The notes under the pieces: generated by a model
What the model saw: the letters and a program-made list of their open reading frames with translations, nothing else
The model's database searches: none
What the model was told of the DNA's origin: nothing
Shown: one piece after another, positions 13,073 through 63,600 of the stretch
How positions within the stretch are numbered: position 1 is the stretch's first letter
Layout of the letters: each line of letters begins with the position of its first letter
Translations under genes and position numbers: made by a program
Source of the DNA: Podarcis melisellensis
Lineage: Eukaryota
Reading direction: 5' to 3' (one strand)
NCBI GenBank assembly: GCA_964234715.1
Contig: OZ174280.1
Length of the DNA: 64,000 nucleotides

Positions 13073-13081
13073 TGGGTGGTC
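13073..13081 (-). promoter_or_regulatory. Perfect GLI consensus site GACCACCCA
   Basis: The + strand reads TGGGTGGTC(TC) in a repeat-free block, next to the GC box CTCCCGCCCC. Confidence 0.6.
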
Positions 13082-13884
13082 TCTCCCGCCCCCCATTTGC
13101 CTGTACGTCTTCCTCAAACACAATTAACCATTTAGATGTTGCACAAAGGATTAGCTTATGCATACAAGGCCAGACGCTAGTCCTTTTCCTTGAGGTGGGG
13201 GGCGGAAGGGGGGTGGGGGCAAGGAACCAGGGGGCAGATCTTTTACTTTCCGCTAAAATACAAAAGCCAAGAAAATCCCCTAACCCCTCCAGTTTTCCTT
13301 GAATGATAAAGGCCCAATGGTAGGCTCCTCAGCTGCCCTCAAGTGCAGGCCTCACAAGCTCCTTGCTTTCTTATCTTGATGGTCAGCACTGAAACAGCCT
13401 TAAGCATCCCAGTTGATGTGGCACCCAGAAATTCTGGTACCTTATAAACCCGAAGTTTGCCTTAACACACTATCTGTTTATGAGCTTTGCCTAGCCACTG
13501 GTCTGCTGTGCCTGCAACAGTAATTTCTCGACCCACTGCCACTCATATGTGGAGGTAACCTGTATTCTCAAATGCAGATTAATCAGAGGGATGTTAAGAG
13601 ACAGTGTTCTGAAAAGTAGAGAGTGTCATTCCCCCTCAGGTATACCTACCAAGTACTCACATGTGTGGACATAGTCTGTTGATGTATAAATATTTTTAAC
13701 TCTCATGAGAACAGCAAGTCAAACCTGGGAGATAAAGTAAAATCCTGCTACTTCAGGATTAGCTGCACTCCTTAATTGGAGTTACCACCACTGGGGAAGA
13801 GGAGTATATACAGGTGCTTCCTCTCTTGAGAGCCTGACAATGGGAGAAGAAGCCTCTGTTTGAACTTTGGTTTGGCAGCTGTAT

Positions 13885-14111
13885 TGTAGTGTGGTGTAGT
13901 GGTTGAGAGCGGTAGACTCGTAATCTGGGGAACCTCCACATGCAGCTGCTGGGTGACCTTGGGCTAGTCACACTTCTTTGAAGTCTCTCAGCCCCACTCA
14001 CCTCACAGAGTATTTGTTTTGGGGGAGGAAGGGAAAGGAGAATGTTAGCTGCTTTGAGACTCCTTCGGTTAGTGATAAAGCAGGATATCAAATCCAAACT
14101 CTTCTTCTTCT
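13885..14111 (+). mobile_element. tRNA/CORE-type SINE subfamily with a (CTT)n tail and an internal deletion across the B-box
   Basis: GTGGTGTAGTGGTTGAGAGCGGTAGAC...GGGTGACCTTGGGCTAGTCA...GCTTTGAGACTCCTTCGG...CTTCTTCTTCT. Confidence 0.8.
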
Positions 14112-14407
14112 AAATGACAGCAAGGGGTCAGAAACTGGTGTGCACTCTCATATAGACACACACATATCATGCCAGAGCCATTTCCTCAAGGCCACTTTCT
14201 TGTACTTCTGGCCAGGGAGCAGGGAAAGCAGTTAAGTCCAAAAACATCTACTGTCCAAGCTCTCCCAAGAAATGCTGAGCACATATGCCCTTCTTCTGGG
14301 CTGGAGCAGGCTCTGAGCTCCGTACTGTATTGCATTTGTAGAGCTGGGACACTGGATACCTGCAAGTGTCCCTTGTCTGAAGCTGCTGTGCACATTGACT
14401 TAATAAA

Positions 14408-14542
14408 ACTATAGAGTTGGAAGGGACCATGATGACCATCAAGTCCAATCCTCTACAGTGCAGGGATCTTTTGCCCAACGTGGGGCTTGAACCCACAACC
14501 CTGAAAGTAAGAGCCTCATGCTGTACCAACTGAGCTATCCCA
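14408..14542 (-). mobile_element. tRNA-Lys-derived SINE with CR1-like 3' tail
   Basis: Minus strand GGATAGCTCAGTTGGTACAGCATGAGGCTCTTAC...GTGGGTTCAAGCCCCACGTTGGGC followed by GGTCCCTTCCAACTCTATAG. Confidence 0.88.
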
Positions 14543-14574
14543 CTTGGCTGTTGTGCACGTTGACTTAAGTGGCC

Positions 14575-14766
14575 CTGGGCCATAACTCAGTGGTGGAGCC
14601 TCAGCTTTGGATGTAAAGGGTTCCAGGTTTAATCCCCAGCATTCCCACACAGGACTGGAAGGGACCTGACTGGTAAACCTTGTGAGCTGCTGCCTGTCAG
14701 GGTGGATAATAAGGATCTAGATGGCTCCATGGCCTGACTAAGTGCTAGGCAACTTCCTATGTTCCT
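14575..14766 (+). mobile_element. Older tRNA-derived SINE with a CTTCCTATGTTCCT (CR1-like) tail
   Basis: A-box TAACTCAGTGG and B-box GGTTTAATCCC; related copy at 29530-29695. Confidence 0.7.

Positions 14767-16403: not shown

Positions 16404-16406
<3 letters not shown>

Positions 16407-16466
<60 letters not shown>
16407..16466. repeat. (CT)~30 microsatellite
   Basis: Direct reading. Confidence 0.97.
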
Positions 16467-16471
<5 letters not shown>

Positions 16472-19209: not shown

Positions 19210-19790
19210 ATTCATCATCATCATCATCATCATATCCCACCTTTCCCCTGGACTGAGACTCAAGGCGGCTTACAAAAAAAGTGCAAAATACAGCTAAAAC
19301 AGAAAAGCTAAAAACACAGAAATCATTAAAAAGTAATTAATCAATAATATAAAATATGAATAACAACAATAAAAACATCACAGCAGCAGCTCTTTCCTTA
19401 AAAACAGGCAGTTCCTAAAGGCCTGTTGGAATAAAAAGGAAGAGGACAACAGGGAAGGAGCCAGTCTAACTTATTCCAGGAAGAGAGTTCCAAAGTCAGG
19501 GAGCAGCCACCAAGAAGGCCCTCTCCTGCATTCTCACAAGCACATCTGTGAGGGTGGCGGGACTGAGAGAAGGGAATGCGTATTAAAGATAGAAAAATGG
19601 ATGACTTGCAGAGACGCTGAAGGAAGTTCAAAACAGACATAATTTGTTGTATTCGGGTTAAAATGTATAACTGGTGGAAAATTAATAAAAATTTATAAAA
19701 AAAAAAAGAGAGAGAGAAGGGCCTCCCCCTGAAGATCTCAGGGCCTGGGCAGGTTCATATGAGATAATAGGGTATTGCAGATATAGCCTG
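19210..19790 (-). mobile_element. L2-type LINE 3' fragment containing a nested poly(A) insertion (19575-19711)
   Basis: L2 tail (CTCAAGGCGGCTTACA), AAAGGCCTGTTGGAATAAAA and GAAGGCCCTCTCCTG motifs; the element resumes after the insertion. Confidence 0.7.
19575..19711 (+). mobile_element. 5'-truncated poly(A)-tailed retroposed insertion (L1/Tx1-like 3' end)
   Basis: AATAAA at 19684-19689, an A-tail, and a 10-bp TSD GAGAGAAGGG at 19565-19574 and 19712-19721. Confidence 0.75.
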
Positions 19791-20439: not shown

Positions 20440-20760
20440 CATACTCATGACCATCTTGTTTTTCTGTAGATATTTCAGTTTTATTATATTATCTTAAGGT
20501 GGAGTCAGCAGACACCTAAACAATTCTCAGTATACTGACTGCTGGGCTAATGTATGTATGGTTTCTGAATTTTTTTATCCCCTTTCCCCAACATTCTGCT
20601 TGCCTTTTGAGGGCTGCAATGCTTTGTACTGACAATTTTAGGGACGACAGGCGCAGATGCCTGAGTGAGACTAGTTAATTCAGAATCAAAGTGGATTTTT
20701 AGCAGAGAATATTTTTCTCACTGTGCATCACCTTGCAGTTACTGCTTCTCCTCCCACTGT
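20440..20760 (-). mobile_element. Old CR1 LINE ORF2 fragment
   Basis: Degenerate CR1-like segments (TGTGCATCACCTTGCAGTTA; TTGCCTTTTGAGGGCTGC). Confidence 0.45.
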
Positions 20761-21039
20761 TATTTAATCGTTTTGTAACATTGCGTAGTTAGCCTTAAGA
20801 CTGAATCATCTTGTACTATCTTGCTTTTTTAAGGTACTGGAACCCAGAAAGTTGGCACTTTCATCACAGTGAGATCAGCTAAGCTGTTCTTTTGACTGAG
20901 TACAATCTGTGTGGTCCCTGCTCTTAGCTTGGTTGGCAACACACAGCATTCACTGGATTTACAGGAACCAATATCACCCTGTGCAAGGCAGCATGCATGT
21001 CAATGAGGGAGGATATGGCGGGGGGGGAGGCGGGAAGAG

Positions 21040-21225: not shown

Positions 21226-21278
21226 TCAGATTTCCATCAGCTGTTCAGTACCCATGATAACTTCATTAATGTGCTTAG
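21226..21278 (-). CDS. EIF2B3: EIF2B3 terminal exon, coding part: (S)[16 protein letters not shown]
   Basis: Strong polypyrimidine acceptor TTTCTCTTTCTCTCTTACAG|CT; TGA at 21226-21228; QLMEI C-terminus. Confidence 0.96.
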
Positions 21279-24200
21279 CTGTAAGAGAGAAAGAGAAACA
21301 CATTTTAGAAAACGAGTTATTTAAAACCTATGCCTTATCCAATTTAGAAATGAATTTATTTATTTTTGAGGGGGAGGGGCACAGATTATTTGGTAAGTTA
21401 GGCACCTAGCAAACAAATGATCTGTTCCTGTCTGAGGCAGGCACCTAACCAAACATTAGAAGGTGCCTTGAATGAGAGTGCTTACAAGTATCAATCACTG
21501 TCACATGCAACAAAGGCAGAGAGCAACCAGCAGCTGTAGCTGGCAGGTGTATATCTGGAAATCAGCGTGGAGTCACACTGGCCTAAAGGAAGGAAATGCT
21601 GTAGAAACTAAATCACAGTACGACCCCACCCAGACCAACCTCCCTTTGGCAAGAAGCTGAACCCTCTTCTGTCAGCCCCGTACGGAAGTGGGCCCAGAAT
21701 TAGCAGAAACAAAAGGGCTCTATGGGAGTTTTCAGTCCCGGGTCGAGAGGCAGTTCTTTTCAGCTGGCTTCACCCTGTTCTAAAACCCAGATAGGGTTTT
21801 GCAAATTCTCCACCTCCTCAAAATTTTCTTACCAGGCTGTCTTTTATTTGCCATTGGCAAGGTTACAGATGCATTCAAGCCGCAAAGAAAAGAGAGGGAT
21901 TAAAGAAGGTACTTTCAAAAGGGTCCCAGAATTTGGGCTCTGCTTGGCACAATTGTTTCAGACTGAGAGCATCTGTGCCAAGCAGATCCAGAGCCACATC
22001 AAAATGTCTGATTAGTGCTTGGTGAGGGAGCATTGCCTGGCCCATTTGTTCTGGGTGCTCCAACCTGAATGGCTTGGAAAATGTGTCACTTGTTACGCAG
22101 GAATTTCTGCTGGGAACAGAGGAGTGCTGCAACAAGCAAACTCCTTGGGAAACGCAGACAGAGAGCCCCTCACAGAAAGCTTGGGATCTAGAAGGCTGAT
22201 GAACTTCTGTTGAAATCAAACTGCAATTTGAATAAACACAGGGACAGAAATGACTCAGTCCCAGCAAAACTCCATCATGGCACTGGGCATTCATGACAAA
22301 GTGCTTTCCTCCACCGCACAGCAGCTATTCGCTGGCAGCATCTGTCCTGGAGAGCCTTGCCTTCAGGGGGAATATGAAAGCATCTCCTTGTTGTTTGCTC
22401 AATTCGCTCCAGACAGATTGCTGCTGGTGATGGCAAAGCTAAGCTGTAAAAGAGGAGGAGGAGGAGGAGGAGAAAGGGTGTGTGGGAAGAGAGAGAAGGG
22501 GTGAGGGCCAAAACCCAGGACCACCACGAAGCTCCAGCCCTCAGGGGCTCCAGAAAACGTTCAGTTTACTCACTCAATTACATACACTGTTTTATAAACC
22601 CTTAAAATAAAATAGAAAACAGTCCTTGGCACAGAGTTCCTGTTCTATTATACAGTAGTGATGAAAGACTACGCTGTGTATGAGCACTCCTGAAAAGCCA
22701 GAGATGAATTAATAACAATAACAATAACATTAAAAAACAGAATAGAAAGGAGAGGGTGGGGTTGAGATTGCAGAAATGCAAAGATGAAAACGCACACTCT
22801 CTGGGTGGCTTGAGCTAGTGCAAAAAGCAACTCCTTTCTCTCTCTTGATCTGATGGTAGGTGGGATAGAGGGGATACCCACAGACGCAGGGAGCAGCTGC
22901 AGCTAGAGGTCAGGAGGTGGGGTGGGGCCCGGAAGTTCCATGTGGTGAGGGAGAAGGGAAACAGGTGGTGTGGGGCTGGTTTGTTTGTGTTGGTAACAGG
23001 AGTGGGAGCGTCTCACAAATGCTTGCTCTATTCCGCTCAGGATTTATTTAGACAATTCAGTGGTGCCTCACAGGCCTAATGTGGTGGATGGTGTTGTACA
23101 CTTTAGCCATCAACAGGGGCAACTGCAGCTCCTAGGATGCAATGCTCTATTTAAATAGGAGACTTTTGTTAGTTGATGCACTCACTATAATGGGGTGTGT
23201 CAGTAGGATGAGCGCCTTTGGGTCTTCCCAGGTGTAATAAATGGGGGGAAACGTAGTTAATCCCTATTGTTGCATTCACCTGTCGGGTAAACAGCCAAAA
23301 TATCTATTATCAAAATGTTTTCACTAAAAACAATTTATCTGAGACTTCTGCCTGGACAATAACCACTTAGTTTGGGACTAGTTAGCCCCAGAAAGCTATT
23401 CCCACAGTGAAAAGTCTTGCTTAACCAGGATTAATTATGGACTGATGTCTTCTGGTGTAAGTGCTGGGAGCTGGGCAAGAAAGTAAATGTCTTACAGAGG
23501 AACAATGGACAAGGCAACTAGGGGCAAAACTGGAGGAATTTGCTTCTGCAAATATCTAGGATTGGAATATCCATGCATCTAGCTGTAGCAAGAAACCACT
23601 AGCTCTGCCTCAAAGTTCTGAATTCAGCACCTTTCCTGCTTCTGACAAATTAGGCATATTCTGTGATCATGATGGAGGTAATGGAACAGCTGTAGCAACT
23701 ATGCTCAAGATCCCTGAAGAAAGCTGCTTACTGGGGTCAGTTCGGATAGGTTGCCTCTCATGCACTTAGACCAGGGGAAGGCAGAATGGCGCCCCCTCCA
23801 GATCTTTCTGGACTCTGACTTCCATTAACCCTGACCACAGGTCATGCTGCCTGGGGCTGATGAGATATGAACTTCAACAACATCTGAAGATGAACAAGTT
23901 GGTACTCCTGACTTAGACCAATGGAAGAAGAGCCAGCAGATGAAGTCCAGGAGGCATGCAGACGGAGAAGGACAGACATGTCCCTTCTATTGCTGGGTAG
24001 GACAAAGTCAGTAGATGCGCCAGGAGAAACCAGGAGCTTAATGCTCTCCAAGAGTCTGTAAGCCAAGACAAAGGGAGGGAATGCTGGTATGAGAGAACCC
24101 CATTCCAGAACCAAACCTAGAAACCCTGCTGGACCTACCCAGAAACAGAAGAAAGGGAGAGTGGTTTGCTGATATAGATCTTCTTGAGACAGGCATAGCT

Positions 24201-27200
24201 CCACATCTGAGAAGGACAAAACTGAAGAGTTCTAACACTAATATTTCAGGATTTAAGGAATTGCCAAGGAGCATCAAATTCCTATTACTTCAAAGACTGT
24301 TGCACTTCAATCTTGAGATCACTGTACACAACGTGGTATCATGTTCTTCTGGGGCTTGATGGGAAAGTGATAGTGGATAAACAGACCCTTCGTCAAGTCA
24401 AGGGCAAGGTAAAAAAGATCAGAGCAAGCCCCTGGGCAGCTCCCAGTGTTCATTGCTGACTCAGGTATAGATGATGTCTCCATCAAGAACCACAGTCATC
24501 TGAAGACTTAAAGAACAGACTGGCAAGGCCTTCCCTTTCAGTGGCTCTGTCTCATTGAGAGGGCTATATGCAGTCTCTTAAGGGGCCTCTCACTGATTCT
24601 ACAATCACATGTTGCAGATAAGCTGCTACAGGGGAGCTATATTTTATTGTGAACAAACTGTCCTAGAGTTAGATAACAATCTTCTTGGATTAGCAAGAAT
24701 CTGGATATTTTCATATCTAGCTCACATCAGTCTATATTTTGTCTTTTTATGGGTACCTACTATTATTTGAGCAAGAGAGATTTCATCAAACCTGGCCTGC
24801 TACTCTTGCAACCAAGTCCCTAAATTTAATAATGAGAGAGGGAGAAATGGCATGTTTGTGAAGAAGATAAACAATATTTTTAAAATGTATGTAGAAAAAT
24901 TGTGGAAAGCATTGTCAGCATTTCCAGGTGCATATGTGACAGATGCATATCCAGGGCTCCTCAGCCCACTTCTGAAGGTGAGCTGGGGAGAAACAAGAAC
25001 AGGAGATGAATGGGACTGCAGGTTCTTACAATGTGCTTTTTCTATATTTCTGCAGAGCCACCCATATGCAGATGCCACTGTAGGCTGCATGTACACAGCC
25101 CCTAAAGTCAGTTCCCTGGAGTTAAATTTCCAAGGCCTTCCAGATGCACAGTTGCGATTATACAAATGTCATGCAGTGATTTGGACAGCTAACAACAAGG
25201 TCTCTGACTCACATGGGCTGTTTACAGAGAACCTCAGGCCACACAGAGCAGTTTCCTGTTGTGATAGATTCTAGTCCAGGATAGACCTCTGCATTCAGAG
25301 TCTGATCTCTTTTGACCTTTCTGCAAAAGTATGATCATTATTATAGAAGAAGAGAGAAACGTTTTACATTTTAAGGAGACAAGCAGCCTTTTAACTTTAG
25401 CTTGGTTTCCACTGAAGAAGGTAAAACTGGATTACAAGGCTACTGCCAGCTATTGGCTACAACAAATGTGCCAGGCGGGTTGTAAAGCTGACTTTATATT
25501 TAATGGGCATGTGAAAGATGAATGCTTGCAGCTCTTGGATTCATGACTATAACAAATTGTTTAAGACCTACAAAACCATAAGAAGCAGCATGCCAAAAAG
25601 GGTTATATACCCATCTGTTCTTGAAGAATATTATTTAAGTTTATAAATCTATTAGCAAATAAAAAGTATGTTCAGATCCTTAGCACTGGACCTATGATGG
25701 ATTTTCCAAGGAAGTGCAGCAGCATAACAGAGAATTGGAAGGGTCAGAAACATAGAACTGAGTATAACATAGAGCTGAGTGTAAAGAATACCATGAGGAA
25801 GGATTAAGCTGCCTTTAATGAAACACTGTCCACAAGACACTGAAGCAAAATAACTGTGTACTAGCTACGCTTTTGGTCATCAAATTGTAAGTATGTGAGC
25901 ATATTGAGGCAAATTAAGTGGGGACCTACAAAAACAAGAAGGAACACAGAACACATGACATATGAAGACTGGCCACGGGAACTCCAGACTTACTCTGGAG
26001 CAGGCATCCTCAAAAGCTGTCATTATGGGTCTTACCAAGCCAACAGGATCATCACCCAATACTCCCCAAGGAACTGGAAGAGTGGTTCATAGTTTGCAAC
26101 ATTCACTTTAACTCTTAGCTTAGGGGTCAAGGCAATAAGTAACTGGGTAAACAATGTGCTTGTTTGCCTGTGTGCGCATTTGCATGCATGTGGAGGAAAC
26201 ATGTGGTTGTTACCCACCAAAGAAGATCAATTGGGTATTAGTGCTGATTTCCAATGGGCATTTAGCACTGATAATCAATCACCAGTGAACAAAATTATTT
26301 TTCAAGATGCATATAATATATGGTGGTGGTGGTGGTAGAGTCAGGGCAAAGTGTGAATCTTTTCTAAAAATTGCAGGTGCCTCACAAGGGATGCCTACTT
26401 CACTATTAGAGAAGCAATGGTCCAGAGGGAAAAAACGATGAAGAGGAAATAAAATGTTGTCAAACATTCAATAAAGATGGGGAAAAGAAGGAGAAACAGC
26501 TATCTGCTAGGACAACCGGGAGATAGCCCCCAAACAAAACCAAAACAAATGACAACTCTAATGGGTTCAATTTATAGTGGACCAGACTGAATGTGGGTTG
26601 CAGAAAGCACCTCCCAGCTGTAAGAGTAGTTGGGCAACTGAACGAAAATGCTGCATGGCATGTTATTTCCGGGATTACAAAGCAACCCTAACTGTTGATC
26701 ACCACCTCTACATCTGAAGCCTTGTTGCCTCCTATTGGTCAGGAGGGCAGGTGGGGGGGAAGTGCCAGTGCCAGGCTTGCATAGCAGAGAGCTCAATCTG
26801 GCATCCCTTTAGAATACACATTGTTTCTACTGCTCCAATTTCACATCCCTCTTCTGCAAAAGGGCTGGCTTAATATCCAGCCGATCCTTTGCCAGCCCAG
26901 TTCTCTGTACAGTGGTACCTTGGTTCCCGAACGGCTTAGTTGACAAACAAATCGGCTCCTGAACGCCACAAACCCGGAAGTAAGTGTTCCGGTTTGTGAA
27001 CGTTTTTTGGAACCCGAACATCCGTTTCGACTGCTGGCATTGTTTCCGGGGCTAATCAGCCAATCAGAAGCTGCACCTTGGTTTTCGAACGTCTTGGAAG
27101 TCAAACGGACTTCCAGAACAAATTGAGTTTGAGAACCAAGGTACCACTGTAATTGTTTTACTGGCGGTCTGTTAATTATTATATATGCTTTATGCTGTAT

Positions 27201-45610: not shown

Positions 45611-45642
<32 letters not shown>

Positions 45643-48600: not shown

Positions 48601-51600
48601 CTGAAAACAAGTAAAACATTTCCTGAGTGCAAGGGCAGGGAGGTAAACTGCTGTTCTGTTTCTGCTGCTGAAGCATTAACAGCTGTTTCGCAAGTTACTG
48701 ATAAAAAAGAATATACTGTGTGCACATCTGTACATGCATCTCCTTAATGGTGTGGCTTACGTATGGTGAAGCAGAAGCTAATCTTCTCTCCCCCCATGTG
48801 ATGGAACAGGTATACATGTAGCCACTCCAAACCTAACTATGCAACCAATTTGCACACAAACGGTGCAAAGAAAGCAGTAATAAGTGAAGCAGGCTTAAGA
48901 GAATAATGCTGCAGGTAAAGACTCTGCTTTCTGAAGAAAATGGTGACTTTGGCATAATTTTTATTGTACCAGTGGACTAAATATGCTCACAAACAAATGA
49001 GTGAATGAATTCTGAATGCAACTCCACAAATTAAAGCAGAAAAAGTAGGGCGGGATGTATGCGCAGATCAAACAAATACAGATTTTATAAAAAAGGAGCA
49101 CCTCGAACCAAAAAACGAAAAAAACAAAATCAGAATGTTAGAAACAACACTCCCTTTTAAGGACTCCTCATTGACTTTTGCTGTGATGTTTTCCCTCAGC
49201 ATAGTTTCCTTAATAATGTTACCATCCTGGAAAGTTAAACATTGAAGGAAAATCTTCTCTGACCATCGAGACCCCTGTGAAGATTTGCACATTAGTTGGG
49301 ATTACCACCCAGGTGCAAACACATTTTCAGTCCTGACCCCAAATGCTTCAACTGTTTAGATATCTTAAAGGCGGCCGGGGTGGGGGGGTGGGGGTTAGAG
49401 GCAACCCACACAGTTTCTGGATGAATTCAACTTTGTGGCTTCTTACACAGGCTGACAGCAAGTAGTGGCCCCCTTAGCCATACTGCTCAAAATTAACAAT
49501 GGTAGTAGCAGTGCTCTCTCTCTTGCCCCTGCCATAAAATGGCTGCCATCCCGGCTATGCCACAGCACAGGTCCCAGTCATCTCAAATTGCAGGACAGCT
49601 TACTGTCCAATGCCTGGAGCTCCTCCAGATGACCTGTTTATTAAGCATTTGTCCTGTTTTCTTCCTACAAAATTTACATAGATGTAATACTATGCCTGCT
49701 CTTTATTGAGCATTTGTATTGAGCAGTTTTGCTTGCAATGATATTACATGGCAATGAGAATTCAGGGTGGTCTTCCTACCAATCCATCCATATCCCACAC
49801 TTTAGGATGCATTTCCCTGTCACTTTCCTAACTGCAAGAACTCTCTCTGAGTGTTGTTTTTTTAAGTGGATTTGTTGTGCCGGAGCACTTTAATCTATTT
49901 TGATTGTACAAACCTAAATTGCCCTCAAAATGGTGGCAATCTGGAGAATGCGATGGTATCCTTTAAAAGTGTGAGCAGTCTTTGGCCACTCAGTCTCCTT
50001 CCTCTAAGTGATGCAGCCAAGATGCAGAAACTTCCCACCTTACCCATCAACAAAATCCTGCAGCATTTTTGCCACACCTACCACACAGTATTGGAAATTT
50101 TACTATGTATTTTGTGTTTTTTATATTGTAATATTATATTGCAAACTACCCTGAGACCTACAGACGAAGGGTGGTCTACTTACTAAACAAACAAACAAAC
50201 AAACAAACAAACAAACAAACAAACCCATACAGTTTAGATTTCCAACAGATAGCACAGGGTGCCCGACAAAAGAACAAAGTAAAAAATAAATTCCTTAAGT
50301 TTGTGTATTTATGATCACAGGACACCAGTCTATATTGGACTGTTGCAAACATGTACACACCTCCATCTTCCACAAGTCATGCAACATCTCAAAATTGTTC
50401 CAGTAGACAGATAAGCATGCAGATGTGGTTTGTTTTTGTTTTACCTGTCTGTTAGCTTCAATGTAAAGGCCAAGAGTGTTTACTCGGTAGCACAGCCCAT
50501 CTTTCATTATGTGAACATAACAACGAACTTTCCCTTCATGGAATGCTTCCTTCATATCTCCTCTCCGATTGTTCCAACAAAGGTTGTCTGTGCCCAATTC
50601 AAACAGGCTATCCTCCTTCAAGAAGCTATAGATGTCTGTACAATATGCAAAAGCCATAAAAATGAGATTTGAGTGAACATCACATAATATTTTGAAAACA
50701 TTACTTGGGAAAGCATACAGCACATCTTCACATGCATGTTTCTGTGTGCGGTACAAAATGCCATCCACAAAAGTGGATGTGGCTCTCACATGCATGCACA
50801 CATGTACAGGATACTCAGCCCCCCATCAACTGATCTGTGCAATTCAGCTGAAGCAGGTGGGGTTGTCTATAATTAAGCAGTATATAAGCTGTCTAAATAA
50901 ATACATACTCCTTTTTGAACTAACCTAGTGGTTTCTGGTCCTTTTTCCTTTGGTCGTGCTCTTTGATGTTTTGTCCCTGTTGCAATGGTGCAGGAGATGA
51001 AAACTGCTTCCTAACCAAGTATGGAATCAGCTCACTTCGGATTGATGTAAATGACCTAGGGGAAGTCGAAACAAAACAACATACAGATATTAAATCTGGA
51101 AACACTTCGAGAAAAACAAGTTGCTTATTTATGACTGATATTCAAGTGGTTATCTTTGCATTCATGCCATTGGATTTGAAACCCAAGCAGAGCATTTGCA
51201 GAACCTTTAAACTGTGAGCAAGTAGACATGCACTTTGGTTTTGACTTCTGTACAGCACTGAGCACATATTAGATACTTTATATATAATACAGAAAGATGA
51301 CACAAGCCAGTGAGCTGGTGCTCCTGTGTCCCTTCTCCTGAGACAGAGAGAACTAGATTTGGACAAGAACCCTCTAGTGCTCATTACGTTCCACACAGCC
51401 TCCTTATACCAACCGAGAAGACACAGCAGGAGCAGGGAAGGAGAGTGGGTTAACTGTAGTATACTTGGCCAACTATAACTTGGACGGATGGCTTTAAAAG
51501 AGGATTAGACAAATTCACAGAGGATAAGGCTACCAATGGCCACTAGTCACAATACCTACGTTCTACCTCAGAGACAGTAGGTCTCTGAATACCAGTTGCT

Positions 51601-54600
51601 GCAAATGGCAGGTGGGGAGGGCACTCTTGCCCTCAGGTTCTGCTTGTGGGCTTTCCATAGCCATGAGGTTGGCCACTGTGAGAAGAGAATGCTGGACTAG
51701 ACAGGCCTTTGTTCTGGTCCAGCAGGGCCCCTCTTGTGTTATACTATACAGATAACTACTTGAAGAACACGGGGGGGGGGGGAGATAAGCAAGTTGCTTT
51801 TCTTCTTTGAGGTCTCTGTGTAGCCTCACAAGTGGGCGAATGGTAAATAACTGGATCAGATCAGCAGGTCTTGGGACTGAAACCCAAGTACTTACAATAC
51901 CGTAGCTAGAGTAGGAGGAGAAGCTGAAGCAGAGATGGGAGTCTTTGCCAATGTGTTACTGTGGCTGCTCCTGTCCATCAGAAATTTATTTATTTATTTA
52001 TTTGAACAATTTATATACAGCTTAACTCCAATGATATTCTAAGCTATGCAAAAGAAGCTCAATTTAAGGCAAATAAAAATCAAGTACGTGGATCTTAAGG
52101 GGCAAAGAGCTTTGTCTCCTCTGAGTGCATGTTCAGTCTTAGGCAAGAGGTCTTAAGTCATCAGAAGCCAATTGGACAGTGGGGTCAGAAGCAAGGTTGG
52201 AAGGTGCCAGAACAGAGACTGTTTATACAGCTTCCCTGGAAAGTCCCCCCACCAATTCAGCAGAGGAGGCCTTTACCAAAAGCATAAACTCTAAAATGAT
52301 AATTTCCTTAGCAACAGTGCTCAGTCTTGTGCTCCCCAACTAGACATACCAAGCAATAACCTTGCCTGCTTCCACACCTGAGGTGCTTTTTAAACATTAC
52401 CTACTGTGTCACAGGGGTGGTGGTAAAATAAAATAAAATGATTTTTGCAAAATGCAAATGGAGTCTAAGCCAATTAACTGAAAATACTAAGAAAATGAAA
52501 GAAAAATGAGTAAAATCACTGAGCTCAGAGAGGACGCTCAGATAAAGTTCTCTGTTATGCTGCAATGATCAGAAAAGAACTGAGGAAGGCACCACTTTGC
52601 CCCTTGCGACAAGTGCATGAAAGGCCTGGCTAAATTGTTGTTCTGTCCAGTTGTTCTTAGGCTGCAACTGTCCTCAGCCCCAGCCAGCATGACCAAAGGG
52701 TTAGGGATGATGGGAGCTGCAGTCCAGTAATATCTGGAGGACTACAGATTAGCCACTCCTGCTTTAGTTCCTGAGATGCTCTGAGAGGCACAGGAACTAC
52801 AAGCCCCATCCCACTCCACATTCACAACATAAAAGCATTAGCCATGTCAGTTAAAAAAACCCAAAACCAAACCTGGGTAAAATTAGAATCTAAATAGTTA
52901 TGTTCTGAAAATATTGTTGGTACTAAGCAGCTTTCACTCAGCAGGTGTTCCTTTTTGTAATCTTATCATGGTTTCAGACAAACAATTTAGTGGTGAAAGG
53001 ATTAAAACAATTTTTGTGGCATTATAGATTTCTCCTCTATGTTTGTAACTAGGACACCTGGGACTGATTTGCTGTCTCCTTGTATGTTCCAGCAGTGCTG
53101 ACTTATTTGCCTCACGAAATGAGGATAAGAGGCTAACTCTGCTTGTTTAAAATTGCAAGCTCTTGGACCACACATGGTTCTTTCCTTAGGGAGGAAAAAA
53201 GGCATTGCTTCTAGGTTGGCACATAGCAAAGATGAAGATCATAGAAATAAATCATGGAGAGTGAGTTATTTCACATGTTGAACAGATTCTTAAAAGATGC
53301 AGCATATGCACTAAGAACAATCCTGTAGTAGTTGGTCTTCTCATAGTACCATATGTATGACACTTTCTCAAACATGGAAATTGTTTGTAGTGTTGGAAAA
53401 TGTGTATAGTGTAATATATGAAGTGAAATGAGAGGGATGTGAACATCTCAGGTTCATACATCAGGAAGCCATGGTGGTATTTGTTTCCTTATGTGTACAA
53501 GCCACCCATCATATATTACAGGACACACATTTTTTCCTACTCAGAGATGATGTTTGAAAAGTAATATGCAAAATGGCCTTGAGACATAGAGGAGTTGGAT
53601 TAGGTTTGAAGCCAGAGTTGATTTTTTCCATCTCTGACTTCCATGGGATATTTCAGCTTTCATCCCCAGACCTACTGTAAAGATTAAACCCAGCATTTTC
53701 CTGGCATTGGTACCACTGAGGTTTTCAACCAAAGTTTCATAATTGTACCCTATAAATTTTTAGGCACTGCTTGTGGAGCAAGCTGAAGTATCTAAACATA
53801 ATTATATTATTTTGTCATAATTTTACCCTCCTCTGTGCATTGTATTTTGCAATCTGTCCTTAATGTCTGAAATAATCACAGAGCTATAATCAAGAACTAA
53901 TGAATAACTCTTCATTCTTGAATCACAGCATCTCTCCCTGCTGTTTACAATCTGAGTGCACCATAGTTCCTCCCCCGCTGCCTTGCCTTCTGCCATGCAT
54001 GTGGGTATGCAGATGGGCAGTTTACTAGCTTAAAATGTTTACATGCAGCTGTGTCATTCAGCAATGATTTCCTGCTTGGGTTTTATGCTGAGTTCAAAAC
54101 TGACAGTCCTGTGTTTCTCTCAGACGCTGACCAGAGCATTTATGGGATCCATTACATATAAAATTGCTGCGTTTGGCAGAGGCCAACATTGTCTGATGCA
54201 ATGATGCCCAGCAGGGCATTAAAGAGATGGAAACGGGAAGATGGCAAAGCTTGTCTCAGGATGCTTCTACCTAGCATAATATTGCCCTTCAAAAAATAAA
54301 AATAGGGGTGTATGTGATAAACAGCATGATCTCTAGCTTGGCACTATCAACCTGCTTCCTTTGTACCACACATTTTGTAGGAAAAAAATAATCACATGTG
54401 AATGCTGGTCATTCGGTGCTGCTTAAGCAGAGCTTATTGTGGATTGTCCCAGGGTCTAATGCTTTTGGAAGGTATTGTTTTATTAGCAGAAAGGCAGTGA
54501 GCAATAAAGCCTTTGGAATTTTCTTTAAGGCTTTTGCCAACACTAGTGACGGCGTGAGAATCTTACATGGAAGTATGCCAGCCAATGTGGCAAATTAATA

Positions 54601-57600
54601 TGGAGCTGGAGCAAGAAGGAAGGGAAAGGCAGGAGGATTAACACTAACAGAGGCCAATAAGAAGGAAGATGGGAAGAGCCAAAGTAGCCCATCTTGATTC
54701 TTCAGGTAAGACAGAAGCAGCAGCTGCCTGCTCAGATTATAACAAAGGTGCCATCTGCACCATACATTTAAAGCAGCACCATACCACTTAAAACAGTCAT
54801 GGCTCCCCTTCAAGCATCTTGGGAACTGTAGTTAGTTGAAGATGCTGTGAGCTCTGATAACTGTAGCTCCTTGAAGGGAATAGCAGTCCTCCAACAACTC
54901 TCATCACTCTCTGCAGATGGGGCATAAGAAGAGGTAAACTGATAAAACCCAGACATTTCCCCTCTTATCCTGGATCCTATACCTTCCCCAAAGGCCTCCA
55001 AGTGATTGAATTGTACTGTCTGATCCACATACAGAAAATAATTCAGCCACAAGTGAGTGAAAACTTGCAGTCATGGCAGCTGAAGCCTGCAGAACTCTGC
55101 AGGAGGAGGAATATAGTGAAGCAGAACAGAGGCAGACAACTTACACGCCGATGGCTGAAACAGGACTCCCCAGCAGCATAAAAATCTCATTTGAAAAATG
55201 TGGAGTTTGGCCTTATTGCCACGGACAAAGTCTCATGCAAAAGGTTAACTGAGTAAGAAAAACAAACTGCATGCAAAATCTGTTGATTTCTAAGACAAAT
55301 CTAAAACAATTCTGGGGTTGGCTTTTTATTTTGAGGGCTAATATTTTTAGGACAAGGGTAATGCACACATGTTCACCAAATGAACATCCACACTTCATCG
55401 CACAGGAAGCTTCATGAATGTTTTCATGGAAGGGATGAAATTTCCATTATCCAAATAAAATATGTAAAATTAGCCACAGGCCTACAGCTTACAATATATT
55501 TATAAAATGTCCTTCATGCAGAGCAAGATTCCCGCCTCTGCAGAACAGGATCCCAAGAACGGGCGTTTAGCAAAGCACACCCTAAATCCTGAAAAATATT
55601 TGACAACGCTGTTAGTAACAAAAACTGGCCCACTGTCATGCCAAAAAGCAACAAAACCAGCTACTCCAAAATCATGTCATACAGATAATTCTTGGATGGT
55701 CTCCTCTGCCTCCTAGTCCTCAATATGGTGCTCTTTGGCCTGACCCCCGGCAGGGATGGACACAGCCATTGCTTATACTTCCTTGTACTGTTTCTTGCTT
55801 GCTTGAGAAGTTTTTACTACAAGTGTCACTCCCATTTCGCTGGCTGTCATTCATTTTTATTTTCTATGTTTAAAGTTAAACACCATAAAACAGTATTAAT
55901 GAGTATTAGCATTTTAATAGCGCCTTGTGTGTTTTTTTAATACTGATCTGTGATGAAGTGTGAAATCTTTTATTGTTGCCAGCCCCCACCTGTGAAATCT
56001 GCTATCCTTTCTTTAGCACTGCTTACAGGGTGGGAGTGTTGCCCTCCTCATTAAGAAGAGCAACACCATCACTTATTTTCTCAGGTACAATAGTAGTTAC
56101 AAAGACCAAAGCAACAGAGCAGAATTGTTCCTTTAATTTCAGGGTCCCCCTGACTGATTGCTTCATTTGAAGGTTTGTTGAGACTGTAGGTAGGGTTTCT
56201 TAACATACTGAGGGATTAAGCCTAAACAATTATAAAGTTACTTCCCTGGAGCTTTTGAAAAGAGCTCTTTGGTTCTTGGCTCAGTTCCTCTGTTGCCTCC
56301 CTCCCACTTTTTAGTATCTTTCTACTATTAATATCTGCCACTGCTTTGCCTTCGCCTCTCAAGCCAGCTGCACCTCCTATGGGAAGTTCACCTGACACTT
56401 CTGGAGAGCTGTGACTTGATATTGCTCCGGTCTGTCTTTTACACCACCATCTGGTAATATCTGGCTAGAATTTAAGCAGAGATTTGGCTAGGTTTCCTAC
56501 CTCTATTATGACCAGGAAATTCATATTGATCTTAATAGGAATAGACCAGTGTTACACCTATAGCAGTATGGGTTTCTAACCGACAGATGCTTGTCAATTA
56601 AGTATTAATCCTGCCAATTCAGTCCTGATGAGTTTTGCAGATTCAAAAAAATAAGAAAGATGTAAGTGGGGGCAGAGGAAGGGAGGGAGGGACAAAAAAG
56701 TAAAGAGGATAGAAGAAAGAGAAAAGTTAATTATGAACCCTGTTGGTACATAGTTCATGGTTCTCATCGTTTTAAGGGATAAAGCCAAATAACGTTTAAA
56801 AATGCCGTGTAAACCAGGCGCACTCTTGTTGGATCTCAACATTATTTTCTCCTGATCCTTTGATGGAGATTAAAAATTTCCATGTGAATACAAATAATGA
56901 AACAACAGTTACTTGGAGGTTTCCCCCCAGCTCTCTATTTCTCCAAACTAGAGCAACCAGTCACAATTCCCCTCCCCCCCTCAATCCCCACTGCTTTAAA
57001 GGAAAAAAAAAGTCAACTCACTTTGAAGAAAAAAGACAAAACAATGCCAAGAACAGGGGGATTAGGGAAATGATATTTATATCATGGACCAAATTAAAAT
57101 GTCAATGCAGGAGGCGGGCAAACAGCCCCTACCATATATACACACCAAACATGTCTCTTCAAGTAAAGGGAAAAGAGATTTGAAAAGAGTTAATGCAGCC
57201 CCCAGTTAATACCACCTGCTTCAGACTCCACACTCCTTAAAAGACAGGGTTTGGGTTGATTTCCCACAATATGGCTTTAGTGAGCACAATGGAAGAAGCC
57301 ATTATTAGCTTCTTCTTTTTTAAACTTTCTTTACTGAGTCCCGTCTCTAAAACATAGGAATTTCAGAGACATGCTAAGAATGCAGTGCTAGCAGATGTGC
57401 GTTATATGCAACAGTAGGGAAAATAAACAGGCATACAATTTTTGGCCTGGACTGTGTGTACATCATTTTGCCTCATGTCTTTCCATGCTCACAGATCCCG
57501 TTTGATCTCCTGGAAAAAAATGGCATCCACAAGTGTGGAGATTGCACTACTTTTCCATTCTACTGAAAAAAAAGTCACTCTGCAGTCTGAGAATAGATGG

Positions 57601-60600
57601 AAGAACTTCAAAGAAAATACAGGATGACAATGACGGATGGTGGTGTCATGAGGGTGTTTCATAAAAACAGCGAAGAAAGCATGGCAATTCCACAGTATAT
57701 GTCTACTGTAGAAGCACTGGATAAAATCTATTCTTTCCCTCATGCAGTGCTTATATTGCCACTGAAAGTGTCACATGGCTGTGGTTACAAAATGATATGT
57801 TCATCTACTGTTGTGTACCTGTTATATTACTAGTAACAAGAGTTTAAGTCCAAGGAAACAGATCAGTTTGATGACTTCAGGGTCTCCATTTAGTCTGACA
57901 GTTCTATGCCATTGAATTTTATAACACAGAACAGGTACAGACCTTAAGTGGAACTATAAAGCCATGTTCAGAGATGTACCATATCTTGGAGTTAGTTATT
58001 CCAGACTCCTGTTCCCAATTATTCATTGTTTCTGGTAACAAATTCAAAAAACAAAACAGTAATCTCACTTAAATCAAATTAAGGTGCTTCTTAATATACC
58101 CCAATGTATGCAAAAATGTCCAAAGGTACTCAAGAAGGTGGTATAGCCCCCGGCATGCTTGGATAAAACATTATTTGGAGCCAGACTGGCTTCAGACTGG
58201 TTTGGGGTCTGAAACTGACTCAGTTGCTCTGGTTGATCGTTGTTGGGAGAGAGACGGTGTGTGTGACCTTGTTGATTCTCCTTGACCTTTCAGCAGCTTT
58301 TGATACCATTGACCATGGTATCCTCCTAGACCTCTTGCAGAATTTGGAAGTTGGGTGCACTGTTTCATGGTGGTTCTGCTCTTATCTCTGAAAGCAATTC
58401 TAGAGCATAACACTGGATGACTTCTGTTTGGTTCCATGAAAGTTCTTCTGTGGTTGCCCAACAGGATTTGATCTTGTTGCCCAAGCTATTTAACAGCTAT
58501 ATGATGGCGTCATTAGAGGATCTGGGGTGAGGTGCCATCACTATGTTGATGACATCCAGTTCTCTCTCTGTTCCATCAGTGTCAGGAGATGAAGTCCAGA
58601 CAATGAATCTGTGCTTAGAGGCAGTAATAAGCAGCACGTGGACCAAAAAACTGAAGCTAAATCCAGGTAAGATGGAGGTGCTATTTGCAGGTAGTTCCCA
58701 GGTCTGGGACCAACAGCCTCTTCTGGATGGGGTTGCTCGTATTTTAATATATCAAGAAATCAAAGGATTCACATACAGTTCTATGATTCAAAATACTCAT
58801 ATACCTACAACACTCTGAAATGACAGTTACAAAGACTGTTAAAATCTGACAGTGTGCACATCTGAAAGCTACAAATACAACTGAGACCAGCTAGGAAACA
58901 TAGGCACCAAAGAAATCGAAGTAGCGCTGAGCAGAGAAAAAGCTTCCTATGGAAGAGATGGTGACTTCAGTGCCCTCAAAGTTTCATTCCCTTTCAGGTA
59001 CTCTGTCCTCCCTTACTGCAGGACCACCCCCAACTCTGTAAATCCTCAGATTTAAGAGTTATTGAGATAAAATAAATGGGACTGTTTAAAATGTAGGCAA
59101 GTGTGAAGCAGTGGTCTCCTCATAAGTAGGAAGGAAAAACAACAACCACATATCCTTAATTGCACATTTACTTAACAGACAAAACTTCATATTCCACATT
59201 ATAAATAATTAGGATATACATTTTGTTTGCATTTTGATTACTAGAAATATTGCAATTTGCTCAGTTTCTTCTGAACAAATTTGTTTCTTTATGCATTTTA
59301 ATCACAAGGAAAGTATTCATTATACAGCCTGATTTTTACAGGGCAAAAAAATAAATTCCAGCCATACGGCTGACGTGTTCTCTATTAGATGTCCACAGAG
59401 CAAGCTCTGTTTTGCAGCCATCTTTTCGGCATGCGAGAAGAGAGAGAAAGAGAGAGAGAGAGAGAGAAAGCATGCATTAAGCCAGGAGTTTGGCTCTGCC
59501 AGACCTCCCTCACAGTCTGTAGGCCTTGCCAGGAAACACAGGTGACAGTGTGAATGATAAAAAGGCATTGAGAAGGGAAAGCAAAGCTATGGGCTGGTTT
59601 AGTCTGGGCAGCATCTTAATGTAAACCTGCAGAGGCCTCTGTGTACAACATACCACAAAGCAAATCAAGCAGAAGCGTATGGACAAACTATACCCTCATC
59701 AACTGAAGCAGAGCTTCCCACCCCCTGGTAATCTCAGTATTCTTCATAGGAGGTACAGGACACATTTCAACTTTTCCCTCGCAGGAAGAATTTCAAACTG
59801 TAGCTGAGGTTGGAGAAGTGATCTTTTCTGGAACACTTTCCCAGAGAAAGGCAGGTCTGGAGGGCTGGCTGAAGGAAAAGGAAGGGGAACTATACAGGAA
59901 GTGGTTTATCAAAATGCAGGGTTTTTCAACCATTTATAGTTGTTTTTTAAATTCCTGTTTTTCAGAAGCACCAAAGGTGACAATTTAGCTAGTCTGAATA
60001 CAAGCCAGCCAAGAGCTACAACTGGAATGTAACAAGCTTTTCAGCAGAGCACAGTAACCACGTTACTCAGCGGACTGCTCCACGCGTAGCTGTTGAATCT
60101 CACTAAGGACAAAAAATTAAAAATTTGACAAAATAAAGACAAAACTAATTCATCAGTTTTAAATTCTAGCTTGGTTTATTTAAGAATATATATAGGAAGA
60201 TAGGTTACTCAAGAGGAAGTTGTCCTCAAATCTTCCTTTTGTAATAGGTGCCTGATTCTATTTTGCTCTCCTTCTTGTTTAGTCAATGCATGCCTTTCAC
60301 CCTCAGAATCAGGCTCAAAGGTTCATTTTACTAAATAATTGCCTACCTTAGCTGTGGAGTAGATGAGTGGCAGCATGGTATAATGGGCTCGGACCTTGAG
60401 CCAGTCACTATCTATTGGTCTAGCTTACCTTACAGGGTTACTGGGATGATAAAATGGGGAAGAACTGTATCCAGCACTCTGAGGTCTTTGGAGGCAGGTG
60501 GTGGGAGAGGTTAACTGTAATAATGAATGAAAACCAACCAGCACAGTTTGAATCTAGATAAATGGCAACTGCTTGGTCTGGTGATATAGGAAGGTGTGGA

Positions 60601-63600
60601 ACTTCCCGCTATAGACGATATCCAGCCCCCCGGTCCTGTTCTGCTGGGAGTCATGAGGACTAGAACCAGAAATTTATTCATTTCATCATTTTCTATCTTG
60701 CCTCTTTCACCAAAGAGATTCAATGGGACTTACGAACAGTATTAAGAACAAAATTAAAATAATCCCTAAATGTACCCCATAAGCATTCAGATTAATTAAG
60801 AACAAATAAATTCCAGAAGCACAAAAGTAAGCAAAACTGACCCAGCAAAACTTAAAACATGAACCAAATGCATTTTTTAAAGCCAAGTTTTAGCTTATCG
60901 TATTAATCAATAGAGTAAGGGTTCCCAACAGATCTTGCACAGCAAGGGACTCTATAGGGTAGGTGGCACAACAGAAATGGCCCTACTCATAGCTAACACC
61001 AACTTCACCTCCCAAGGTTGAGGGATCTGAATCAAAGCCCCAGATGACACTCAGTATGTGCAGGGAGGAACATTCTGAATAAGACAGTTTCCAAAGCACA
61101 CAGATTCCAATATACGTTTAAGACCAGCACCTTGAATTGAGCCCAGAAAATCACATAGAACCCAAATGATAAAATCAGAGTGCTGCGGTTCTGTCAGCAT
61201 TCTACATGCAGTATTCTGCAAAAACTGAAGCTTCGAAATAGTTCCACATAGAGCATATTACAGCAGCCTAATCTGGAGGTCACTACAGAATGCAAAGTCT
61301 GCCTTTCTCACAAATGGCTGTAGAATATTCAAAAGCATAAAGGCACAACAGAACATTCTCCTCCCCCCTTCTCTCCACAGCCCCCCACCGCCCCCCAAAC
61401 CTGGCTTAGGGGTTCTTGCAACAATTTGGAGCAGATTTGTGGAGAGTGCAGGGTATGCACAGCGGGAGGAAAAGCCCTGTTGTGCAAGAGGAAATCCTTG
61501 CACTCATGAGATGTGGGTAGTTGAATACAGTACTGCCCCTGTCCTTTTACCATTCGAGTGCATTGTACTGAAGGGAACATCCTGCATGTAGATGTATTTT
61601 TGAAGCTGACCTCTCTTCCTTGGCTGGCTTTTTCATGAACAAGTCAAGGTTTAGTAAACTATTATCTCTGCTGTATCACGTAGCAGCATTTTTTTTACTG
61701 ATTTTCATTCTATCCCACTCACACCAGCTTTTTTAAAAGTGAAAAATAGAGTTGCATTCATGAAGTTTCCTAAATCCAGACATTTGGCTTTCAAGGTGAT
61801 GAGAGACACTGAAGTACACAGCCTATTTCATTTACGGTAGTGACTACAGCAAGTGGTAATAAAAGTGAGGGTCCTTGGGCTCAACTATGGGCTGCTCCTG
61901 ATTTTAAGGCAAATGCGCCGACTTTTTCCTACAAAGACTGTTCTAGCCAGGATTGCTCTCTTCCATAAATGGTTGTTTTGCTTCCTCTCAGTGGGTGGTC
62001 TCAGTTTCATAGAAGAAACACCACAAGTTAAAGAATACAGGATGTATCAAAGATGTGCAAGGTTATCCAGGATGGGCTGGGATTTGCAGATGCACCAAAC
62101 AATATACACACAAAAGGAATGGAAATATGTTAATTTTGTTAACAAGGAAGCCCCAATAGATGTGAATTAAGAGAAAGCAGGCACGTATTAGGTTTCTCTA
62201 AGAAACCAGCAAGATTATTGGTTCAGTGTGGTATATCCCATCTTCTATTGCTACTGCTTTTGGGTGGGAAGTTATCAGTCATAAAAAAATACACATTTGA
62301 GGGTTTGGATTTAATTTAAGTGTCTAAACAGCTTGCTTTGGTCTTGTCAGATACAGTTAACTGTCAAGCATTTATGCTGAACAAACTTCCCTCTCATTTG
62401 ATATGTTCAGCTAGCAGAGGTCCTGTGGCAACTTCTTAGTTAAAACCAATGAGCCTTCCCATATCACACATGGCACCAGTGGTCAACTAATTTTGGATAG
62501 ACTTGGTGGCCAGTGCATCTTTTGTCAATATGATCAATGTCATTTCTTGTTGTTGCTGTCGTATTTATAGTGATTCAGTACAATGCCTTGCAGCTGTGTC
62601 TGCAACTATGCAATCTGTACCAATGTTTCAGGAAAACTCAGTTAAAAAGTTAATGGTTAAAAGAACATAGCCATCACTAAGAAGCAGCTCTGACACCAGC
62701 TGTATCTCTGAAACACAGCAGAAGGTCAAGGACAAACAGAGGCACCTCTGTGGTTCTTCTGCAGTTCAGAAATGGAAAGGGGCTGTGGACTCCTGCAGGC
62801 CTTCTCTGCACCTGCCATGCAGCTGGAGTTCCATCCACCTGAGGCACAGGCACAAAAATGAGCCAATGGGGAGGGCAAAGGCTTGTTTTAGCTCTTTGCT
62901 GGCATTGAGCAAGCATGAAGCTAAAGCAAATTGCAACCTTCCTCCCATCTTTGGGGCTGGAATCATCCCTCCACCTTTGTAGCTCTGTTTCTGGGAGGAA
63001 GCTTCTGGCTTCTCTTGTTCACCAGAGCCCAGCTGATTTTTCATCAGGTGAGGGCTAAAAGCAAGACTGCTGAACACAGTGTCTCACCAGAAGTGCTTTC
63101 TTCCACTAATAGTGTGCAGGGGTGATATACAGACAGGGTTGTATTCAACATATCACTAAGCAAATCATTCTTTCCCTTTCCTCCCCCAATGTGCTTCCTA
63201 AAACTGTTCTGAGCTCCCCCCCCCCAACCCTCCAAAGCAGATTTGGAGATTGTGTGGCATAAAGGGGCATTTGTATCTGACATTGTCACTACAGGGTTGG
63301 CATAGGCGGTGGAAGAGATTAACCTATGGAACACAGGTTAGGTAGAAAATACTGCAGCTGCTAGAACGGCAAAAGCTTAAGGGTTTGTTGTGTTTTTGTT
63401 TGTTTTTTAAGAGAGGAGGAATTTAGGAAGCATTCAAACCCAATCACAGCAATTAAATGGGGTTGAGAATCATAAAAGTATCTTCTCTCTGCCCACCCAC
63501 CCACCCTCTTCCAACAGTGGAAGAATCTCTGAACAGAAAATCCCACCTTATGCATTCCACATAATTTCTAATGTGATTATTAAAATGCTTTAAAATGCAA

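Follow-up and report, generated by a model that had tools for sequence, protein, structure and literature searches.

The stretch of DNA considered here, referred to below as the window, comprises 64,000 nucleotides of one strand of the genome of the lizard Podarcis melisellensis (contig OZ174280.1 of assembly GCA_964234715.1) and carries the 3' half of EIF2B3 on its minus strand, together with the DNA beyond the 3' end of that gene. Three exact and 17 one-mismatch matches to the consensus binding site of GLI-family zinc-finger proteins, GACCACCCA / TGGGTGGTC, are present in the window, and several of them are placed in non-coding blocks that lizard and birds share in collinear order. We suggest that these are constrained GLI-family sites which probably belong to putative distal enhancers, with the Hedgehog target gene PTCH2, the neighbour of EIF2B3 in other vertebrates, most plausibly being the candidate target.

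Single exon-bearing open reading frames (ORFs) of the window matched human eIF2B gamma from the PDB in phmmer searches (residues 261-328, E 1.8e-20; residues 403-443, E 1.7e-11), and squamate EIF2B3 proteins placed on the window with tblastn gave seven minus-strand exons covering residues ~185-451, the closest protein being that of Podarcis muralis. Both searches agree with the earlier note on this DNA, which had recognised EIF2B3 here; the gene is encoded by the minus strand and its 3' end is found at ~21.2 kb. Taken singly, the exons map as follows (tblastn):

63635-63733, minus strand, EIF2B3 exon
50926-51057, minus strand, EIF2B3 exon
50415-50636, minus strand, EIF2B3 exon
46515-46607, minus strand, EIF2B3 exon
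44908-45057, minus strand, EIF2B3 exon
29047-29172, minus strand, EIF2B3 exon
21229-21279, minus strand, last EIF2B3 exon, followed by the stop codon

An exact string search found TGGGTGGTC exactly three times in the 64 kb (13073, 38554 and 61992), always on the plus strand and each time followed by T, just as had been reported at first reading; the five one-mismatch variants named there (33304, 35562, 35950, 49764 and 59022) are likewise all present in the full list. It follows from the exon positions that sites 61992 and 38554, called sites 3 and 2 below, are intronic, whereas site 1 (13073) comes 8.2 kb after the stop codon of EIF2B3, with an N gap (12590-12748) ending 325 bp to its left. 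The three sites and the conserved blocks around them are:

13073-13081, plus strand, perfect GLI motif (site 1), reading GACCACCCA on the EIF2B3/PTCH2-sense (minus) strand
12881-13335, no strand assigned, conserved non-coding block with site 1, shared with three bird loci
38554-38562, plus strand, perfect GLI motif (site 2), within the 16-kb intron that separates the EIF2B3 exons at 44.9 kb and 29.1 kb
38498-38974, no strand assigned, conserved block, site 2 close to its left end; no other zero-difference run against Podarcis muralis is as long (477 bp)
61992-62000, plus strand, perfect GLI motif (site 3), within the intron that separates the EIF2B3 exons at 63.6 kb and 51.0 kb
61960-62044, no strand assigned, 85-bp conserved block with site 3 at its core, 81-83% identical to four bird loci

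The loci used for comparison came from the birds Mimus (L001), Cariama (L002), Todus (L003) and Taeniopygia, the zebra finch (L005), and further from the teleost Characodon (L004), Podarcis (L006), the rodent Mastomys (L007) and the bowfin Amia (L008). Comparison of the window with the four bird EIF2B3 loci by blastn revealed 26 collinear blocks, 19 of which are non-exonic and account for 5632 bp, or 8.8% of the window. Identity between lizard and bird in these non-exonic blocks ranges from 70 to 92%, and some of their cores can also be aligned to bowfin, teleost or rodent. Judged by their collinear order, the distance between the lineages that share them and a similarity above the neutral level, these blocks are conserved non-coding elements.

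The block around site 1 is 76-78% identical to three bird loci over 400-470 bp (E 1e-84 to 1e-88), rising to >90% in its central ~200 bp. In each of the three birds with this region (Mimus 57859, Cariama 61386, Taeniopygia 112939), and in Podarcis too, site 1 itself (GACCACCCA) is matched exactly; the bird match was judged from separate alignments, as a blastn gap beside a lizard-specific 8-bp insertion obscures its exactness. The same 9-mer is present 497 bp past the eif2b3 stop codon in bowfin, where it aligns to site 1 (blastn E 0.005), and 519 bp past the stop codon in the teleost Characodon. Both fish keep GACCACCCAGC along with an upstream GGTTAATT..TTTG module and a spacer between the two, and a five-species alignment preserves one order throughout: GGTTAA.T.T.TTTG, GTA, GACCACCCAGC. 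This order is common to the fish and to lizard and birds, and site 1 is therefore part of a module shared by ray-finned fish and sauropsids. At the collinear place in Mastomys, 3.75 kb past the stop codon and after a block homologous to 16.95-17.07 kb of the window, stands GACCACCCAG. The site 1 block also contains the motifs TGTTTAAAAATATTTA and TTAATTG, neither of which differs between lizard and birds.

Site 3 is exact in Podarcis and in four of four birds, across which it forms part of the invariant core GA-GACCACCCA-CTGAGA. A CC(A/T)6GG (CArG/SRF-like) motif, CCATAAATGG, is located 24 bp from it at 61965-61974 and is also invariant in the lizard and the four birds. In each bird locus the only copies of GACCACCCA on the EIF2B3-sense strand are the equivalents of sites 1 and 3. 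The collinear intervals of rodent, bowfin and teleost yielded no counterpart of site 3; as far as tested, it appears to be conserved at the lizard-bird level only. A search for proteins homologous to a chance ORF running over site 3 (61844-62167) came back empty.

Near-perfect copies of the motif occur in further conserved blocks:

35496-36509, no strand assigned, 1-kb intronic block with two one-mismatch motifs, 73% identical to four birds over ~1050 bp
35562-35570, minus strand, one-mismatch motif TAGGTGGTC, exact in four birds
35950-35958, plus strand, one-mismatch motif AGGGTGGTC, exact in four birds
32367-32375, plus strand, one-mismatch motif TGGGTGTTC (GAACACCCA) in block 32331-32498, exact in four birds
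20908-20916, plus strand, one-mismatch motif TGTGTGGTC (GACCACACA) in block 20859-21013, exact in three birds
49303-49311, minus strand, one-mismatch motif TGGGTGGTA in block 49163-49338, exact in three of three aligning birds
1539-1547, plus strand, one-mismatch motif TGGGTGGGC in the weakly conserved block ~1418-1602

Between lizard and birds, then, two of the three perfect sites and no fewer than five near-perfect ones have not changed, and two of these are also found in fish. Finch and bowfin retain the motif at 35562 (TAGGTGGTC) together with a TGTTTAC close by; Characodon has a different one-mismatch variant, TTGGTGGTC, at the same place, and TTGTGTA at the TGTTTAC position. This forkhead-like TGTTTAC, which adjoins the 35562 motif, is contained in TTGTTTACAA on the minus strand at ~35640-35660 of the window (~94160 in the finch locus L005, ~31560 in the bowfin locus L008). 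The motif at 20908 is situated 321 bp beyond the EIF2B3 stop codon.

Of the 20 exact or one-mismatch motifs, seven fall into bird-aligned non-exonic blocks, compared to 1.8 expected. As controls we used 224 CpG-free 9-mers with the same base composition as the GLI motif: only 4/224 reach seven occurrences in the blocks and 5/224 have two or more perfect copies there, and several of the high-scoring controls are one-base shifts of GLI sites. All seven in-block motifs (13073, 20908, 32367, 35562, 35950, 49303 and 61992) are exact in every aligned bird, against a baseline of 17% of 9-mers in the same blocks (P ~5e-6 if the sites are independent). Birds share most of their history, and since the baseline was taken from the same birds the comparison is a fair one. 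By this measure the GLI motif itself is selected beyond the conservation of the surrounding block. The idea of a GLI-dependent landscape is thus partly supported by cross-species conservation, which offers better reasons for it than the count of sites put forward earlier.

That count had been presented in the earlier note as a matter of rarity (about 0.3 perfect sites expected, all three co-oriented and all extended by the same T). Dinucleotide shuffling of the window gave an expectation of 0.44 perfect copies, with three or more in none of 100 shuffles, and 13.3 sites with up to one mismatch, where the observed total of 20 was reached by 5 of 100 shuffles. The control 9-mers, by comparison, occur 0.92 times in the window on average, and 18/224 of them (8%) are present in at least three copies, as are 4769 distinct 9-mers overall. 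The chance of co-orientation for three sites is 0.25, and the trailing T varies at site 1, being replaced by another base in two birds and the teleost. With 8% of controls doing as well, co-orientation so readily met by chance and the T unconserved, the rarity argument carries little weight. A repeat origin of the three sites was considered and rejected, as their 1-kb flanks show no similarity to each other or to the rest of the window.

Site 2 behaves differently from sites 1 and 3, in that no homologue was found in birds, even with a word size of 7 within the collinear interval. Conservation in other reptiles, which the earlier note had made a test of its proposal, thus holds for 13073 and 61992, both exact in birds and the former also in bowfin and teleost, and fails for 38554 at the level of birds. 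Site 2 is present in Podarcis, where at ~96% identity a 9-mer survives by chance two times out of three, and its presence there therefore says little alone. More telling is the distribution of differences: the window is ~96% identical in DNA to the Podarcis locus, zero-difference runs have a mean length of 31 bp and a 99th percentile of 196 bp, and most of the longest runs other than the one at site 2 coincide with bird-conserved blocks, and therefore long zero-difference runs mark constraint. Contigs of four more distant organisms were further aligned to 35400-41399, with matches at conserved blocks only; two more distant relatives match 38541/38553-38745 at ~88% identity, with nothing beside. 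On these alignments, site 2 is at the edge of a conserved element of lizard or squamate level.

Six other zero-difference runs against Podarcis (220-419 bp) have no bird alignment: 30969-31387, 25363-25635, 25082-25311, 27847-28067, 41023-41274 and 53491-53781. They may represent further lizard-specific constrained elements in the EIF2B3 introns.

The whereabouts of PTCH2 can be approached through other species. In Mastomys, 8.7 kb after the stop codon of EIF2B3 and on the same strand, begins a gene of 1221 residues that encodes Patched and sterol-sensing domains. Its upstream region has TGGGTGGTC (L007 78449) 440 bp before the ATG in a GC-box-rich promoter, as well as a second perfect site, GACCACCCA (L007 73948), in the opposite orientation 4.9 kb upstream of the ATG. 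A resemblance between the GC-rich flank of the rodent promoter site and the flank of lizard site 1 was dismissed as coincidence: the two are oppositely oriented, and the lizard's run of G is inserted with respect to birds. PTCH2 and EIF2B3 are reported to stand side by side in a synteny block conserved across bony vertebrates from teleosts to amphibians, with neighbouring genes of the block present in lizard and mammals (PMC3502363). From this synteny in other species we infer that PTCH2 is positioned to the left of the window in the melisellensis genome. The earlier claim that it starts just downstream of EIF2B3 is borne out in the rodent, where the two are adjacent and on the same strand, and finds no match here within the 21 kb to the left of the stop codon, which are free of PTCH2 exons. 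Searches of the bird, lizard and fish flanks with PTCH2 exons 1 and 2 (tblastn) were also negative, these flanks ending before PTCH2. On the other side of EIF2B3, HECTD3 is found immediately upstream in the zebra finch, as in mammals.

Towards the left end of the window, finch 115879-116088 (E 1e-4 and 0.005) and bowfin sequence can be aligned to the weakly conserved block at ~1418-1602. The aligned place of the 1539 motif reads GCCCACCCA in the lizard and GGCCACCCA in finch and bowfin, the latter being the reverse complement of TGGGTGGCC, the motif of the zebrafish ptch2 -3.9-kb Gli2a peak (III). The likeness between this block and peak III is one of motif and relative position only; it hints, as a lead only, at a promoter a few kb beyond the window. 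Deep non-coding blocks shared by finch and bowfin were also seen between EIF2B3 and PTCH2 (78% over 187 bp, E 5e-31), pairing L005 117213-117396 with L008 40444-40626 and L005 115989-116060 with L008 38462-38534. A coding (PTCH2) origin of these was rejected in view of stops in all frames. The block at L005 117213-117396 holds GGTGGGTGGC, and its lizard counterpart is expected beyond the left end of the window.

On balance we favour the interpretation that distal GLI-responsive enhancers of PTCH2 are located in and beyond EIF2B3, a bystander gene, and consider it reasonably probable; GLI occupancy, Hedgehog response, enhancer activity and target are all predicted here from DNA sequence. A collinear series of conserved elements runs through the 3' half of EIF2B3 and past its end, several of them with GLI-family zinc-finger motifs that are themselves under purifying selection. 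Under this interpretation these blocks would act as distal enhancers, switched on by GLI activators under Hedgehog signalling and silenced by GLI repressors without Hedgehog. Their target would be PTCH2, beyond the left end of the window and on the strand of EIF2B3, with negative feedback induced by Hedgehog as the outcome. The part of EIF2B3 would be that of a bystander whose introns could not be separated from PTCH2 without loss of elements. The dense collinear non-coding blocks in a housekeeping gene fit this proposal, which the earlier note had made for the EIF2B3 introns; the terms enhancer and target remain predictions in it.

PTCH2 antagonizes the Hedgehog pathway by feedback and is one of its direct targets; in the literature consulted, its described GLI-bound regions are at the promoter, a few kb upstream of it, or intragenic. 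Mouse Ptch2 is GLI-bound in four of four chromatin immunoprecipitation (ChIP) datasets, and its promoter enhancer (chr4:116,767,757-116,769,455, mm9) needs a single GLI site (PMC4765071). For zebrafish ptch2, Gli2a ChIP peaks are described 550 bp and 3.9 kb upstream, the latter with TGGGTGGCC, as well as within intron 2, with GACCACACA (PMC3828767). Mouse Ptch2 is credited in that paper, which cites Peterson 2012, with only three GLI-bound regions versus 14 for Ptch1 (PMC3828767). The lizard locus resembles these known Ptch2/ptch2 regions in its target gene and motif family, including the rodent TGGGTGGTC close to the ATG, and differs from them in that the three perfect lizard sites would be placed further upstream (at least 13 to 62 kb) and are not a promoter site. 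The multi-enhancer architecture of Ptch1/patched, reported by Lorberbaum et al. 2016 (eLife, PMC4887206), is alike in that a Patched-family feedback gene appears to be served by several dispersed elements with GLI/Ci motifs, some of them ancient; here, in contrast, the gene would be the paralogue PTCH2, and the candidate elements are positioned upstream within a housekeeping neighbour.

A second point of reference is provided by genomic regulatory blocks. These would be alike in having elements of a developmental gene in the introns of an unrelated, broadly expressed neighbour, with linkage kept from fish to amniotes, and unlike the present case in that the block here would be small, its target a signalling receptor and not a transcription factor, and that target a predicted one. 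The concept of such blocks with bystander genes was reportedly introduced by Kikuta et al. 2007. No relevant work combining Ptch2, Eif2b3 and GLI was found in the literature searched.

Several observations weigh against PTCH2 enhancers driven by GLI. Neither a search for the exon 2 motif nor tblastn with rodent PTCH2 exons 1 and 2 detected any PTCH2 exon in the window, which also has no CpG island; the absence of exons means that this target would be at least 13, 38 and 62 kb away from the three sites. Site 3 and most of the blocks were not detectable in the one rodent (Mastomys), and MAFFT left the flanks of the rodent site 1 unaligned, the agreement extending to no more than its position and 10 bases. 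The four birds cannot be counted as independent of one another. In the comparison with more distant relatives, differences close to where an alignment ends go unlisted, and the result concerns the block around site 2 and not its 9-mer. The raw count of three sites is weak evidence, being not significant against the empirical null. Finally, ZIC proteins bind the same motif as GLI. The blocks could then be real enhancers with motifs read by ZIC-family or other C2H2 factors, or could serve PTCH2 or another gene without Hedgehog input. Conservation of a motif indicates constraint and does not name the factor, and the additional conserved homeodomain-like, FOX-like (TGTTTAC) and CArG-like motifs of the blocks suggest tissue-specific inputs. 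In zebrafish, moreover, mutation of the -550 bp GLI site in a ptch2 reporter was without obvious effect (PMC3828767). Against such a factor other than GLI stands the fact that two of the conserved sites are the exact optimal 9-mer of the GLI consensus, and so does the conserved variant GAACACCCA, known as the Gli site of the Foxa2 floor-plate enhancer. Another conserved variant, GACCACACA, is on record as the motif of a zebrafish Gli2a ChIP peak (PMC3828767). With the neighbour gene Ptch2 also being among three loci GLI-bound in every mouse dataset (PMC4765071), we regard enhancers without GLI input as unlikely, if well worth keeping in mind.

It is less likely still that the blocks serve some other gene, be it EIF2B3, HECTD3 or a distant developmental gene, and that their GLI motifs have nothing to do with Patched feedback. 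The lack of a PTCH2 exon in the window, the position of HECTD3 just upstream of EIF2B3 in zebra finch and the ability of enhancers to skip genes would all be compatible with this. EIF2B3 and HECTD3 are, however, broadly expressed genes of housekeeping type, for which such dense and deep non-coding conservation would be unusual; the oldest module sits in the space between EIF2B3 and PTCH2 in fish, birds, lizard and rodent; and PTCH2 is an established direct GLI target. We find it harder yet to believe that the motifs came to be in the blocks by accident and were conserved merely along with them. Three copies in the window are unremarkable when 8% of control motifs do as well, the core of the site 1 block is >90% identical in any case, and many motifs could have been looked for at first reading. 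On the other hand, GLI-like motifs are enriched 3.4-fold in the blocks, a rank reached by 4/224 controls of which some are shifted GLI sites, and the seven in-block motifs are exact without exception against the 17% baseline. Moreover, the motif of site 3 is the invariant core of a short block, and that of site 1 has been retained in fish despite the divergence of most of its flanking sequence.

If the favoured interpretation of GLI-responsive PTCH2 enhancers is true, the regulatory domain of PTCH2 reaches tens of kb into EIF2B3, which would explain in concrete terms why the two genes are linked from fish to amniotes. It would also provide short defined elements (12881-13335, 61960-62044 and 35496-36509), orthologues of which exist in chick-like birds and fish, and would bear on the interpretation of non-coding variants in EIF2B3 introns. 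The same elements could show why the Hedgehog response of PTCH2 is strong in birds and fish and weak in mouse. PTCH2 is described as the strong Hedgehog responder in fish and birds, with PTCH1 taking that place in mouse (PMC3828767). Most of the GLI elements were not detectable in the one rodent, and on a more speculative view, with a single rodent as its basis, this difference in complement could underlie the reversal of Hedgehog sensitivity.

The usual dating puts the split between bowfin and tetrapods at 430 million years ago or more. A bolder extension, which we put forward tentatively and with some doubt, is that an ancient Hedgehog-feedback landscape has held EIF2B3 and PTCH2 together for at least 430 million years, that sauropsids kept or added further GLI elements up to >60 kb upstream, site 3 being an example, and that the complement of enhancers underlies the reversal in sensitivity. 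The oldest modules of such a landscape may be the perfect GLI site past the 3' end of EIF2B3 and the intronic module of GLI-like and FOX-like motifs.

The largest of the deep intronic blocks is free of GLI-like motifs, although it belongs with the other blocks to one landscape:

56650-57395, no strand assigned, intronic block of deep conservation, sharing 78-82% identity with four birds

Cores of this block are present also in bowfin, teleost and rodent. None of the conserved blocks matched an RNA family in Rfam, ARAGORN called nothing in the window, and the flanking blocks have stops in the frames tested. An Rfam tRNA-like match at 14480-14537 on the minus strand (34.5 bits), not called by ARAGORN, is probably the head of a short interspersed nuclear element (SINE), and the region 11900-12560, which adjoins the N run on its left, has on visual inspection the look of interspersed repeats.

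The window as a whole has the character of CpG-depleted vertebrate DNA with a single N run (12590-12748, 159 N). Dinucleotide microsatellites are present at 16406-16466 and ~59437-59467, and a long (AAG/CTT)n-type run at ~5100-5270 gives rise to poly-K and poly-L ORFs. The only CpG-rich spots are found at 26600-27400 (observed/expected up to 0.83) and 32800-33300 (up to 0.62), with a G+C content of only 38-50%; both are below the usual criteria for CpG islands and may be young insertions.

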